Source: Mantamonas sphyraenae STR306
Taxonomy: Eukaryota; Protista; CRuMs
Assembly (NCBI GenBank): GCA_026936335.1
Contig: JAPMXV010000002.1
Coordinates: 372,001 to 436,000, forward strand
DNA length: 64,000 nt
Direction of reading: 5' to 3'
In this document: positions 13,411 to 55,184 of the stretch, piece by piece
Numbering within the stretch: position 1 is the first letter of the stretch
How the letters are laid out: each line of letters starts with the position of its first letter
The notes under the pieces: model-generated
Databases searched by the model: none
Told to the model about the DNA's origin: nothing
The model's input: only the letters and a program-made list of their open reading frames with translations
Translations under genes and position numbers: made by a program

Positions 13411-16400
13411 TCACACGCCTTCATCGTCGTCTCCGTTCTCACCCATCCCAATCTCCACTGTCACAACCTTCTCTTGCACTTCTACGAGCACTGCGCCTTG
13501 ACTGCTCACCTGCTCTTTCACTTGCATCACGTCCTGCTCCATTGCAGCCAGTTGCGCGCGGACGATGTCCACATCTGCTGCGTTCAGCCCTTGTGCTTCT
13601 GCCCGCGTCTGCACCTCTGTCAGCCATGCTCGCATTTGCGGTACCTGCTCTCCCAGGAACCGGATTGCCTTGCTCTGTTGGCCACTCTTCCTCTTGAGTG
13701 ATTCCGTGTCGCTTTGGACCGCTCGCAGCGCAGTGACAATCTCCTCCTGCGCCCTCGGGTCCAGTGCAGCCACCTGTGCCTGCCATGCTTCGTGGTCAAA
13801 CTGCACCGCGTCCAGAATCTGTGCCTGTGTCCCTTGCATCTCGTGCAGGATGCTCACAATCTCCACCTGCGAGTGCATCTCTTCCTTCTTCATCACCTCC
13901 ACCGTGTCCAGCGTCGCCACAATCTGTGTGAACGGAGGTCGTTGCGATGGATCCGTTGCCCAGCACTGCTCAATCAGCTTTGTTGCCCATCCCGGACACA
14001 CGCTCGTGTCGATCTTTTCTCGCTTGTCTGGCTTGATGGTCCACCTTGACACATGCTTGCTGTGGCCATAGTTTTTCTTGCCGCTGTACGGCTGCACTTC
14101 ATGCATCATCTCCCACAGCACCATCCCAAACGCAAACACATCCACCTTTTCGTCAAACGTCCGCATGGAGACGCTCGAGGATGCCCCTGCATCCTCCTCC
14201 TCGTCGCTGTCCGTGTCAACATCATCCACCAGCAGCTCAGGGGCCATGTATTGCCAGGACCCGGCGCCTGACTTGGTCTTTGTCTTGGTGTGCTCCTTGA
14301 CACGGCTCAGCCCAAAGTCGCTGATCCGTGCCACGCCACGTCTGTCCAGCAGCACATTCTCTGGCTTCAGGTCCCTGTGCATGATCGGTGGTTTGTATCC
14401 GTGCAGGTACGCCATCCCGTCTGCCACATCCCGTGCTATCTGCACCTTGGCCTCCTCAGACAGCCCTTCCGCACCCTCGCCCCTCTCGTGCAGCAGCTTG
14501 TGCAGCGACCCAAGCTCACACAGTTCCGTCACCATGCACACATGCTCCGGTTCCACGCACACCCCGTGCAGTGTGATCATGTTCCTGTGCTTCAGTCCCT
14601 TCATCGTCCGCACCTCGTGGTTGAATGCCGCTGCGTGTTCAGCATCCATCACCTGCACCTTCATCATCTTGATGGCTACTGGCGTGCTTCCACGCAGCAT
14701 CCCCTTGTACACAAAGGCAAACCCGCCCTCTCCCAGCAGTTCCCCTTTCGACAGATCCGACCACGGAATCTCCAGCGACTCGTCTCCGCTACTGCCCACC
14801 TCTGATCCCAGTGGCGACCCAGGCGGTGTCCACCCGTTCGATGAGCCTCTTCTGTCCTCCCCTGCAAGCACCGCCGCCAGACTCGATGCCTCCTTGCCCA
14901 GCAGTGCCTCGGCTGCATTCAGCGTTTCCAGCCGCTCGGTCTGCATCGCCTCCACCTGCTTCACACCCGCCGCTGCCTGGTCCCGCTCCTCCCGTGCACG
15001 GTTGTACTCTTCGGTCAGCTCCTCCTCCAGGAACCGCAGCATGTCTGCCTCTGCCTGCTGCACACGCTTCTGCTTCGGTCCTTTCGACCGTTCCAGACGT
15101 TGAAGTTCCCCTGCCAGCGACCCACATGCCAACTCGGCTGCCTCTTTGGTCATCGTCTGTTCTGCTTTGTGTTGTGTCTGCAGCTGTTGCTCTGTGTGGT
15201 CCACTGCTTCAGCTGTTTCTTCCAGATGTTCCTTGCTCACCTCTGCCAGCTGCTCCAGCGCATGCGTCAGTCCCTCCTGACGTTCACAGAGCAGGCGCAG
15301 CTGTGTGCGCCAGTTCTCACATTGATTCAGTGTTGCTTTGATCTGCTTGCGCTCTTTTGAGTACGCAGCAGGCAGCTCACGCAATGCTTCCTCCTCAGCA
15401 ACCTTGTCCCTGCGCAGCTGTGCCAGTCTGGTCTCCAGTTCTTCAATCTCTCGTGCCATCTCCATCACATGCGTCTCCTTCGCCAACCGCTCCTTCTCCT
15501 CCTCTGCACCCAGTGCCTCCTTCCGTGCCTCCAGCTCTCCTGTGTTGTCCTCCAGTTGCTCCAGCCCAGCTGCATACCGTCTTCCCTCCTCCCTTGTGAC
15601 CCCAGCCTGTGCCAACACCTGCTCCCTTTGTGCCTCTGCCCGTTCTGCAATCCATCCTCCAGGTGACGAGGATGGTTCACCTGCTGCTGCTTCCTTCCAC
15701 ACTCCCTCCCATACCTCTCCTGCTGCTCCATACACCTCCGTCCGCGCTGCCATCCTCTTCTCTGCCCGTTGCGCACACGCTCCCACCAGCTCCACACTCG
15801 TCTGCAGTTCCACTTCCCGTGCACTCGTCTTGGCTTCTATCGTCGTCCCTGCCTGTCGCTGTCTCGCCGCTTGCTTGTGTGTCGCCACCAGTCTCTCCAC
15901 TTCTTCCTGCTCTGCTGTCCACAGTGTCTGCTGTGTCTGTGCAGCGTGTGGAGCAGCTGCAGCCAAGAGTGTGCGTGCGCGTGCGTTCTCCTGGTCCACA
16001 CTCTCCTTCACCGTGTCCAGCACAGCATGGTGTGTCAATGCCACCTGGGTGTCTGCGATCACGGTCTCCAAGTGTTCCTGCACAGATGATGCCTCGCGCA
16101 TTGGTGTCGTCAGTGCGCTGTCGTACAGCACAGACACAACATCCGCCACGCTCGTATGTCCAGACGATGATGATGACAATGCTGTCAGCATGGCATCCAG
16201 CTCAGTCACAAACTCCACATTGGCTGTTGCTGTGGCGTATGCTGGCCAGGATGGGTCAACCGGGTTGATTGCTGCGGAGAGCAGCGCCAGGATGGCCGTG
16301 TTGCCATTTTTCTGGGCCAGCTCCAGGGCATTGGGTTTGGTGCCCAACGGGCGAGTGAGTGGATTTGCACCACGCTCGATCAGCCATGCGCACAGTTCAA

Positions 16401-17847
16401 CGTCGTTGTTGCTGACTGCAATGGTGAGGGCGTTCTCACGGTCAGGCCATGTGTCGACGTGAACACCCCATTCCAGCTGCTCCTGCATGGCATCGGTGTC
16501 AGCAGAGCGGGCGGCGGCGAGGAACGCATCTGCGTGCTCCCTGTTGCGCGAGAGACGCTGGTTGACTGCATCCTCGTACACACCAGGCATGTACCAGCAG
16601 GTGTGGTTGGATTCCAGTGCAGCGACCAGTGCTGCTGCTCCTTTGTCCCCGATGCTGTTGCCCGTGAGGTCCAGAGTCTGCAAGCTGCTGTTCTCAATCA
16701 GTGCCTGACCCAGTGCTGCTGCTCCTTTGTCGCCGATGCTGTTGTAGCTGAGGTCCAGTTTCTGCAAGCTGCTGTTCTCTCCCAGGGCCTTGGCCAGTGC
16801 TGCTGCTCCTTCTTTCCCGATGCTGTTGAAGCGGAGGTCCAGTGTCTGCAAGCTGCTGTTCTCACGCAGCGCCTGCGCCAGTGCTGCTGCTCCTTCTTCC
16901 CCGATGCTGTTGTTGTCGAGGTACAGTATCTGCAAGCTGCTGTTCTCCTTCAATGCCTGCGACAGTGCTGTTGTTCCTTCTGCCCCGATGCTGTTGTTTC
17001 TGAGGTCCACTGTCTGCAAGCTGCTGTTCTCTCCCAGGGCCTTGGCCAGTGCTGCTGCTCCTTTGTCCCCGATGCTGTTTTCCCTGAGGTCCAGGGACTG
17101 CAAGCTGCTGTTCTCACTCAGTGCCTGCGCCAGTGCTGCTGCTCCTTTGTCGCCGATGCTGTTGTCGCTGAGGTACAGTGTCTGCAAGCTGCTGTTCTCA
17201 TTCAGCGCCTGCGCAAGTGCTGCTGATCCTTCTGCCCCGATGCTGTTGAGCCTGAGATCCAGAGTCTGTACGCTGCTATTCACACTCAGTGCCTGCGCCA
17301 GTGCTGCTGCTCCTTCTGCCCCGATGCTGTTGTTCCTGAGGTTCAGTCTCTGCAAGCTGCTGTTCTCTCCCAGTGCCTGCGCCACTGCTGCAGCTCCTTC
17401 TGCTCCGATGCTGTTGTTGTAGAGGTTCAGTCTCTGCAAGCTGCTGTTCTCTCCCAAAGCCTTGGCCAGTGCTGCTGCTCCTTCTGCCCCGATGCTGTTG
17501 TTCCTGAGGTCCAGTGTCTGCAAGCTGCTGTTCCCTCCCAGGGCCTCGGCAAGTGCGGCTGCCCCTTTGGCCCCAATCCACTTCCCCGACAGATCCAATC
17601 CCTGCCCCATCCATGTCAGCCATCACTCCCTCCACCTATCCCCCACCCAAACACCCATTCTTGCCCTCCACTCCCTTCAATCTCTCCATCCTCCATCCCA
17701 CGTTGCCCGCCAACACGACACGTCACGATTTCCCTCCCATCCCAAAAACAAACTCACTTCTCCCGCCTCTGCCAATGCCACCCCAATGTGTTCCACATCA
17801 CCACTCTTCAACAGTGCGCTCCAGTCCACTTTTTCTTGTGTGCTCAT
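13411..17847 (-). CDS. LRR(12)-ANK-coiled-coil-TKL kinase, copy A; exon 1 17847-17758, intron 17757-17602
   Basis: Exon 1 is MSTQEKVDWSALLKSGDVEHIGVALAEAGE with a phase-0 GTGAGT..CTGAC..CAG intron. It has 28-aa RI-like LRRs, ANK (ALTIAV..GANP) and an intact kinase (GEGGFAFV, AIK, HRDLKPEN, DFG, APE). Confidence 0.88.
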
Positions 17848-54215: not shown

Positions 54216-55184
54216 ATGAATTACGATTGGATTGGTCTGCTTAATTCTGGTGACCATGCACAGATTTGTAGTGCACTGGAGGCAGCGGGAGAGGTGGGCT
54301 GCAGCTTGGAGTGATTTGCGGCACGTCAAGAAGCGAGTGTAGGGGCAACCGTGCCGAGTGTGCTGACACGTGGGCCACAGTGGTTGCGTATGGATGACGT
54401 GATGCTGGGAGACGACGAGGTAGTTGCGCTGGCTGAGGCGCTTGGGAAGAACAGCAGTTTGAAAGTCCTCAAACTCTGGGAACACGCCATCGGGGACGAA
54501 GGAGCAGCAGCACTTGCGCAGGCGCTGAGAAAGAACAGCACGTTGCAAACGCTGGACCTCAGTTACAACAGCATTGGGGGCGTAGGAGCAGCAGCACTTG
54601 TCCAGGCACTCTGTGAGAATCGCAGCTTGCAGAAACTGGACCTCTGGAGCAACAGCATCGGGGACGAAGGAGTGGTTGTCTCAAAGGCAATCAAAGGCAA
54701 TCGGTCGTGCTGGAAGATCGAGGGCGTTTTCGATGGCACGTTGGCGACAGTGTTGGAGAGAAACAAGAAGCAGCACGTGGAGTTTGTGGATTGTGGGGAT
54801 GTGGAAAGGATGAGAGAGTTGAGGGAGTGGGGTGTGCCTTTGGACACATTTGCAGGCAACTTTGGGACGGTGACTGCGCTGGAGCGAGCAGTGAAGCGAG
54901 GGGATGACGAGGTTGTGGAGGTGTTGCGGGCGTGGGGAGCGGAGCCGAGGATGGAGACGGTGGAGCTGGTGAGGGAGGCAGGATGGAGGAGGGCGTGGCA
55001 TTGGATCGGGTGGGGTGTGGAGGTGGATGAGGCGATGGAGGTGGCGCTGGTGATGAATGGTGAGGAGAGGGAGGTGATGTTTGCGTGTGGAGGGATGGAG
55101 GCGTATGAACCGAGTGCAGAGTGGATGACACTGCCAGATGAGGTGATGGAGAGGGTGATTGGGTGGGTGGGGAAGGGACGGTGA
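54216..55184 (+). CDS. N-cap + LRR(4) + ANK + F-box/PRANC-like; intron 54294-54380 (alternative start 54186)
   Basis: Exon 1 MNYDWIGLLNSGDHAQICSALEAAGE, phase-0 intron and the same C-terminal module. Confidence 0.8.

Follow-up and report, generated by a model that had tools for sequence, protein, structure and literature searches.

The LRR-ROCO, LRR-kinase and NB-ARC-TPR candidates of Ectocarpus are the closest described counterparts of the leucine-rich repeat (LRR) genes reported here (PMC3341825; PMC11378527). In Ectocarpus, LRRs are joined to ROCO or kinase outputs and NB-ARC-TPR genes occur in the same genome; birth and death of genes are fast, repeat number varies and the repeat face is under diversifying selection. 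The same holds for Mantamonas sphyraenae, where the GTPase output is Roc-like, and in both organisms function has been inferred only. A second point of reference is the cowpox protein CP77, in which a single C-terminal F-box helix (helix 1 alone), placed after ankyrins, binds Skp1 (PMC4353913). Here we analyzed a 64,000-nucleotide stretch of the M. sphyraenae genome (C2:372001-436000, hereafter the window; C with a number denotes a contig), which holds nine LRR genes and ends 3.6 kb before the telomere repeats of C2, which begin at 439,630. The FALCON assembly comprises 25.06 Mb in 78 contigs at 59% GC, a majority of contigs running from telomere to telomere, and leucine-rich repeats, ankyrins and F-boxes go unmentioned in the genome paper (PMC10492846); a literature search returned no publication tying Mantamonas to immune receptors. 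Our genome-wide searches covered this assembly of one strain (25,061,354 bases, 78 contigs). With a probability of roughly 60%, judged from the pattern of sequence evolution, these genes encode lineage-expanded cytosolic recognition proteins in which one LRR chassis is combined with varied outputs, and whose ligands are likely viral or intracellular-bacterial.

A sensor cassette common to nine LRR genes

Six-frame translation of the window resolved nine LRR genes, three on the minus strand (K1-K3) and six on the plus strand (F0-F5). In K1, a first exon of 30 codons (the N-cap; 17758-17847) is separated by a phase-0 intron (17602-17757) from exon 2 (13411-17601), which encodes 12 LRRs, a cap, an ankyrin-like (ANK) segment, a coiled coil, a tyrosine kinase-like (TKL) kinase and a C-terminal helical module. 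The same order is found in K2 (first exon 23707-23796, exon 2 18742-23550), with 20 LRRs and a 10-amino-acid deletion in the cap, and in K3 (first exon 28419-28508, exon 2 24691-28260), with 5 LRRs. The F genes carry, after their LRRs, the cap, the ANK segment and a conserved tail: F0 (39125-40485; first exon 39125-39214, intron to 39275) has 9 LRRs, F1 (40486-41670) has ~7, F2 (47593-49307; first exon 47593-47679, intron 47680-47744) has 13, F3 (49496-51313; first exon 49496-49582, intron 49583-49663) has 14, F4 (51503-53491; first exon 51503-51589, intron to 51670) has 16 and F5 (54216-55184; first exon 54216-54293, intron to 54380) has 4.

The repeats of all nine genes are 28-amino-acid units of the ribonuclease inhibitor (RI)-like type, matched by Pfam LRR_6; their numbers fit the position of the cap divided by 28, and the whole array lies in a single open frame within exon 2. 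The N[H/R][T/S]C cap followed by the ankyrin-like segment is present in 9/9 genes, and over 85 amino acids this segment is similar between the kinase and tail groups at z = 6-18, with none of 1000 shuffles scoring as high. The first exon, for which there is no Pfam family, occurs in 8/9 genes (F1 lacks it), has 26-30 codons with nine invariant residues (M, W, LL, GD, I, A and G) and is followed each time by a phase-0 GT..AG intron of 61-158 nt; its similarity across the groups amounts to z = 4-10, with 0-3 of 1000 shuffles as high. An earlier reading of the window made from its letters alone (the sequence-only reading) had described the shared RI-like repeats, their counts, the cap with its ANK segment and, in eight genes, the ~30-codon exon with its phase-0 intron. 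All of these were borne out, as was the significance of the similarity between the two groups in both N-cap and cap.

Pfam-type searches, run exon by exon on the spliced models, found neither NACHT nor NB-ARC in any of the nine genes. The proteins are likely cytosolic, since neither a signal peptide nor a transmembrane segment is apparent by inspection. In ordinary culture, F2 and F3 are very probably transcribed and spliced, because run X3, which behaves as a transcript library though it is not on record as RNA, skips exactly the introns 47680-47744 and 49583-49663; runs X1, X2 and X4 retain both. F0 has a one-base insertion (+1 frameshift) near 39630 and is either a pseudogene or the product of an assembly error.

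In a set of 363 distinct repeats, variability is highest at positions 6, 8, 10 and 11, and position 13 is also variable in the tail types; these five positions lie on the concave beta face of the LRR. Linker positions 27-28 of the repeat vary as well. The ratio of nonsynonymous to synonymous substitution rates (dN/dS) on the face was 2.2 (95% confidence interval 1.3-6.5) when mutual nearest repeat pairs were picked on all codons and 1.3 (0.95-1.9) when they were picked on scaffold codons; for the scaffold itself it was 0.45-0.48. The repeats of F2-F4 are collinear, with gains and losses of whole units, and those of K1-K3 are not collinear at all. Two processes diversify the face: point changes at five positions of each 28-amino-acid repeat, and the gain, loss and scrambling of 84-bp units.

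Outputs joined to the cassette

A genome-wide census with a first-exon profile, as the sequence-only reading had proposed, recovered 149 first-exon loci leading to several types of output, and the tail is borne by at least 150 loci (368 candidates with a cap-ANK-tail query, 342 with a tail query); outputs were assigned from coordinates and from reading ~50 loci. Judged by coordinates, a TKL kinase follows 14 of the first exons, ten times with a long coiled coil (three on C2, six on C25, one on C34) and four times without it (one on C58, three on C73). Two lead to a Roc-like GTPase, intact on C77 and frameshifted on C76, and two end after the ankyrins with no output. Among the first exons read that belong to a readable gene, 19 lead to the tail, and most others lie upstream of tail matches. 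Two relatives have the LRR-cap-ANK order without a detected first exon: the one on C76 ends in a U-box plus ankyrins (U-box 36 bits, above the Pfam cut-off) and the one on C43 in a coiled coil plus helical module, with no kinase. The outputs also occur behind other sensors. The tail closes an ankyrin-repeat gene without LRRs in the window (44638-47472, plus strand, stop at 47472; its true start is uncertain), and on C9 (~151.5-155.2 kb) a single open reading frame (ORF) encodes Hsp70, one LRR-like unit, the cap-ANK segment, the TKL kinase and the helical module; this fusion kinase is 90% identical to K1, and its Hsp70 occupies the position of the LRR array. One sensor cassette wired to two outputs had been proposed for the window: the cassette is homologous across outputs, but the outputs are of at least five types, plus chimeras.

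Of ~20 related GTPase loci in the genome, only the two on C77 and C76 lie behind the N-cap cassette. For this output, G1, G3 and G4-like motifs are visible and generic GTPase matches are weak; a 40%-identical relative on C68 scores 23.6 bits on Pfam Roc, below the cut-off, and COR was not detected after the Roc-like GTPase.

The kinases of K1-K3 have intact GxGxxA, VAIK, HRDLKPEN, DFG and APE motifs and a Raf-like affinity, and their nearest solved structure is Arabidopsis CTR1 (E 1.5e-47). From the kinase onward, K2 and K3 differ at 2/433 residues, and the arrays in front of it hold 20 and 5 non-collinear repeats. The sequence-only reading had ended these three genes in coiled coil and TKL kinase, which holds; a further helical module that it did not name, 148 amino acids long, lies behind the kinase (13441-13884, minus strand, in K1). 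The same module ends the coiled-coil-only gene on C43 (48%) and, at ~30%, several Roc-like GTPase genes, its carriers overall lying on C43, C74, C52, C56, C51 and C13. This helix-rich stretch is a C-terminal module common to kinase, coiled-coil-only and Roc-like genes.

Variation within the kinase is concentrated in one patch, where 15/20 columns vary, as against 0-7 in intervals elsewhere. In an alignment with CTR1 it falls on the alphaF-alphaG loop and alphaG (14023-14085, minus strand, in K1), an assignment for which we assume standard kinase anatomy. Between K1 and the C34 kinase, 12/21 residues differ in the patch and 22/433 outside it. Three versions of the patch are spread regardless of overall relatedness; one is common to C34 and C58, another to C25 and the Hsp70 fusion. 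The alphaG of PKR is where the substrate docks and is a virus-driven hotspot, positively selected as a target of viral antagonists (PMC5079575); we draw this parallel as an analogy and not as evidence for the same role.

Tandem duplication is visible at the K1-K3 locus as the local mechanism. Both K2 and K3 abut a truncated copy of the neighboring ankyrin gene, and where they meet, the kinase stop and the ankyrin coding sequence share a short microhomology. One 5'-truncated copy (18029-18740) is a passenger of the tandem duplication that meets the K2 stop at such a junction, and a second (23978-24689) lies at the K3/K2 junction; the source of both fragments is the intact ankyrin-repeat gene at 28695-29609, and all three are on the minus strand.

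The domain content of the outputs is directly evident, and swapping between outputs is suggested by a disagreement between trees. The cap-ANK tree separates the main tail group from a second one, in which some tail genes stand with kinase, GTPase, U-box and coiled-coil genes (support 100/99). The first-exon tree places the GTPase gene beside F2-F4 (support 100) and unites the tail genes and kinases of C73 (support 99). The C77 first exon is 87% identical to that of F3 and 57% to that of K1, and its cap-ANK segment is 55% identical to F3 and 63-64% to the kinases; the first exon of the C73 tail gene is 79% identical to that of the C73 kinase. Separate N-cap and cap trees, likewise proposed in the sequence-only reading, are thus discordant, which points to module swapping. 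The direction and number of swaps are not established, because approximately unbiased (AU) tests of the discordance were borderline (p 0.049 and 0.085, 90 columns) and few columns are available in both trees. The data do not demonstrate that the kinase and tail classes have recently exchanged LRR units: at the DNA level the two classes are ~73-77% identical to each other, as against 80-84% inside the kinase class, and with all codons no mutual-nearest pair joins a kinase repeat to a tail-gene repeat.

Tail genes are enriched near telomeres. Among the 150 matches listed, 34 lie within the first 20 kb of their contigs, where ~9 are expected, and all 34 point at the telomere. At least 12 contigs (C4, C7, C9, C18, C22, C25, C30, C31, C41, C60, C67 and C68) have a tail gene that ends 4.0-4.5 kb from the left end, which suggests a subtelomeric block shared by at least 12 chromosomes. 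Kinase genes on contigs other than C2 occupy internal sites.

The orphan tail and the genes around it

The tail is ~75 amino acids long, and in F5 (54951-55184, plus strand) it runs through a short helix, a W..HW loop, a long helix and a loop to the LPDE helix (55131-55175). Among 40 copies, W, H, N, Y, W and P are invariant and LPDEV.ERV+.W+ is kept, which fits the F-box helix 1 motif LP-E..+I+..L; most tail proteins stop ~3-6 residues past this terminal helix. In AlphaFold models the tail comprises a short and a long helix and then, past a loop, a last helix that starts LPDEV, with a predicted local distance difference test (pLDDT) score of 89 when the cap and ankyrins were included and 82 for the tail alone. 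The tail is near-invariant in LRR and ankyrin-only carriers, and therefore a constant partner is implied.

The sequence-only reading had described the six ends as F-box/PRANC-like and had proposed that they target ligands for ubiquitination. The six genes do share one conserved tail, but neither F-box nor PRANC is matched at any curated cut-off, and several results weigh against an F-box. Pfam searches on 18 tails returned no curated match (best F-box-like E 0.045, PRANC E 0.076), and no tail locus was recognized among 93 genome matches to F-box-like PF12937. F-box helices 2 and 3 are absent after the tail's helix 1, the LPDE helix being last in the model, and most of the invariant residues lie outside this helix. 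Fold searches with the tail found nothing above noise (best Z 3.8, no F-box), and a tail hidden Markov model (HMM) had 0 matches among 1.84 billion protein representatives. A larger model of cap, ankyrins and tail retrieved LRR and ankyrin proteins only. Neither a word search nor the viral contigs contained tail relatives from outside the genome; metagenomes gave one 24-residue match to the query, in its ankyrin part only and none in the tail, and the ESM Atlas gave leads below 0.9 only. A viral or bacterial origin of the tail is unsupported, because neither outside relatives, in the protein, viral and metagenome searches, nor fold matches were found.

What does resemble an F-box is the last helix. 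In an alignment of 18 columns (E 4.6e-4, probability 33%), it pairs with helix 1 of a canonical N-terminal F-box encoded in the window by a separate gene (44436-44561, minus strand; 32.4 bits, over the cut-off), and F-box-like, F-box_5 and PRANC are 3 of the 11 weak Pfam families on the tail. Two Skp1 loci occur in the genome (C35:38.4k and 33.8k). The tail is an orphan and fails as a member of the F-box family: only its last helix shows a resemblance, and that to F-box helix 1 alone. The label F-box has not been established for it. By analogy with CP77, we give somewhat less than even odds that the tail works like an F-box, engaging Skp1-Cul1 through its terminal helix. The F-box/PRANC reading is so far unsupported, in that the helix-1-like motif at the extreme C-terminus is the only part that matches and searches with the predicted fold retrieve no F-box; the ubiquitination proposal stands as a plausible hypothesis with a viral precedent. 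The gene with the canonical F-box (43750-44640, minus strand) has hydrophobic, probably membrane-spanning segments after the F-box, spans three frames (frameshifts or small introns) and lies head to head with the ankyrin-tail gene.

A neighboring NLR/caspase/HEPN cluster (NLR, nucleotide-binding LRR receptor) had also been read from the window. The plus-strand gene at 61100-64000 has CHAT-like (E 1e-4), NB-ARC-like (E 1e-4) and strong TPR matches in Pfam; its TPR repeats are 129 bp and it exits the window towards the telomere. Between 55263 and 60181 there are three ORFs, the last Cys-rich, with no Pfam match except a sub-threshold HEPN_AbiU2 (E 0.086), and Pfam found no separate caspase there. 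Within the cluster, CHAT, NB-ARC and TPR thus find Pfam support, and HEPN and caspase do not. Closeness to the NLR-like gene is weak evidence for an immune role of the LRR genes, because both are subtelomeric and other kinase-type genes are internal on other chromosomes. Elsewhere in the window are a 412-amino-acid membrane protein with a weak 7tm_7 (gustatory-receptor-like) match (29680-30918, minus strand; E 0.0097), ORFs of 354 and 714 amino acids without a Pfam match (35345-38612, plus strand) and a purine/pyrimidine-skewed low-complexity region (41686-43750) with a ~360-bp inverted repeat (41805-42164 versus 43206-43567, 91%). Ordinary neighbors lie at 8792-9667 (plus), 11402-13228 (plus) and 31023-33950 (minus), SPO11/TOP6A among them (76% to plant/algal TOP6A); others, by inspection, are a CCR4-like deadenylase and a TrmE/MnmE GTPase beside a folylpolyglutamate-synthase-like gene.

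Candidate explanations and related systems

In the explanation that we favor, a recognition protein would be built on a chassis of N-cap exon, RI-like LRR horseshoe, cap and ankyrin pair, with the concave face as its binding surface. Recombination would have joined this chassis to the orphan tail in most genes, to a CTR1/Raf-like TKL kinase with or without coiled coil in 14 and to a Roc-like GTPase in 2; related chassis bear a U-box, a coiled coil alone or nothing. Ligand on the LRR face may activate the output. Kinase types would dimerize via the coiled coil and then phosphorylate, and tail types would hand the ligand to one constant host machine, for which Skp1-Cul1, reached via the F-box-helix-1-like motif, would be the foremost candidate, again at a little under even odds. 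From the evolutionary pattern we infer that viral or intracellular-bacterial proteins are the likeliest ligands and that the family has an immune function. The intracellular variable-receptor family of the sequence-only reading retains its sensor cassette, variable repeat number, diversifying face and likely cytosolic location. A bolder version, which we regard as doubtful, would be an NLR-independent intracellular immune repertoire of ~150-350 genes in which one recombining LRR chassis is wired combinatorially to degradation (through the U-box and through a C-terminal single-helix Skp1 adaptor that would be the first host counterpart of poxviral PRANC), to kinase signaling, where alphaG would be an arms-race surface as in PKR, and to a GTPase switch, the outputs in turn swapping sensors for ankyrin arrays or Hsp70.

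Three results count against the favored explanation beyond those on the tail: the repeat-unit dN/dS values are sensitive to gene conversion and pair choice, with one interval including 1; the GTPase output falls short of the Pfam Roc cut-off; and the AU tests are borderline. The receptors may also be real and the tail something other than a Skp1 adaptor, namely a new signaling or oligomerization module, or a binder of another adaptor such as Elongin BC, so that tail genes signal. This has a substantial minority chance: the tail has three predicted helices, the final one of which, the LPDE helix, is packed in a larger module, its invariant W, H, N, Y and W lie outside that helix, and no F-box family or fold is matched. 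In SOCS boxes the LP helix is likewise terminal. The alignment of the terminal helix with the genome's own F-box helix 1, the three F-box-related families among eleven weak Pfam matches and the single-helix precedent of CP77 pull the other way. Homology of the cassette itself is hardly in doubt. RI-like LRRs and ankyrins are common, the main tail and kinase groups sit in separate clades of the cap tree, and with all codons no mutual-nearest repeat pairs link the classes; yet a generic similarity between two unrelated families is refuted at the homology level and very improbable, in that a first exon belonging to no Pfam family is conserved with the same intron position and phase in both groups and tail-type genes lie inside the kinase-side clade of the cap tree.

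Two further explanations were weighed. Mostly neutral subtelomeric churn, by which a repeat gene is expanded through unequal crossing-over and domain fusions are tolerated accidents, would fit the subtelomeric enrichment, including the copies that end 4.0-4.5 kb from the left end of 12 contigs, the microhomology junctions with their passenger ankyrin fragments and the broken or output-less copies (F0, L032, L036 and L037); drift has been proposed for plant F-box families (PMC7829749). We consider neutral churn improbable, since variation is focused on the binding face, where dN/dS reaches or exceeds 1, and the scaffold is under purifying selection; the tail and the catalytic motifs of the kinase are intact, long open frames are kept by most copies and the kinase types are mostly not subtelomeric. 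Sensing of targets other than pathogens, whether self/non-self in mating or fusion, prey-derived molecules or selfish elements to be controlled, is unlikely. In its favor, the same signatures are described for fungal allorecognition NLRs (PMC13449251), the organism eats bacteria and F2 and F3 are very probably transcribed in ordinary culture. Allorecognition, however, would usually involve few loci with many alleles and not ~150 paralogues, and the alphaG hotspot would better fit evasion of antagonists, to judge from PKR (PMC5079575). Recognition of viral or intracellular-bacterial ligands by cytosolic proteins is the reading that we prefer.

The family supplies concrete candidates in a culturable organism, with one chassis, defined variable residues and defined outputs. 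To our knowledge, little has been established about the means by which free-living unicellular eukaryotes sense viruses and intracellular bacteria; CRuMs occupy a branch close to the base of Amorphea. Should the tail prove to bind Skp1, it would define a cellular family of C-terminal single-helix F-box proteins, a layout described chiefly for proteins of poxviruses and intracellular bacteria; otherwise the tail would be a new module present in hundreds of copies. A hypervariable sensor face together with a hypervariable kinase docking helix would point to antagonists at two levels.

Unlike in Ectocarpus, where each repeat has its own exon, the Mantamonas array lies in one exon and varies by recombination of 84-bp units, and its chassis, with fixed first exon and cap-ANK segment, serves at least five outputs, of which the orphan tail is the commonest. 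The ANK/PRANC proteins of poxviruses and Orientia, especially CP77, likewise place a repeat domain and ankyrins before a C-terminal LP-E helix and are multicopy and near genome ends (PMC4353913). In contrast to them, the Mantamonas genes are host genes of a free-living eukaryote in which the LRR and not the ANK part is variable, their PRANC match is below the cut-off (E 0.076), 60 extra conserved residues precede the helix and any Skp1 binding is putative. The expanded F-box substrate-receptor families of nematodes and plants (PMC8120010) and the LRR-F-box/U-box/BTB families NEX1/PEX1 of Parachlamydiaceae (PMC4209131) also comprise hundreds of paralogues in which variable repeat arrays go together with alternative ubiquitin-related modules on one LRR family, NEX1 having F-box or U-box. 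In both cases the F-box is canonical and N-terminal, whereas the Mantamonas motif is partial and C-terminal and coexists with kinase and GTPase outputs. With the NLRs of fungi, plants and animals the family shares a variable repeat sensor and interchangeable effector domains; it differs in that the nine genes have no NACHT or NB-ARC and in the reversed order, sensor N-terminal and output C-terminal. The Hsp70 front end on one kinase recalls the integrated domains of NLRs. As in LRRK/ROCO proteins, LRR and ANK stand beside a TKL kinase, but no Roc-COR lies between LRR and kinase, and kinase and Roc-like outputs are on separate genes. The family is a variant among variable-repeat candidate receptors, set apart by a single chassis that serves many outputs, by the hundreds of copies of an orphan tail and by the alphaG hotspot.

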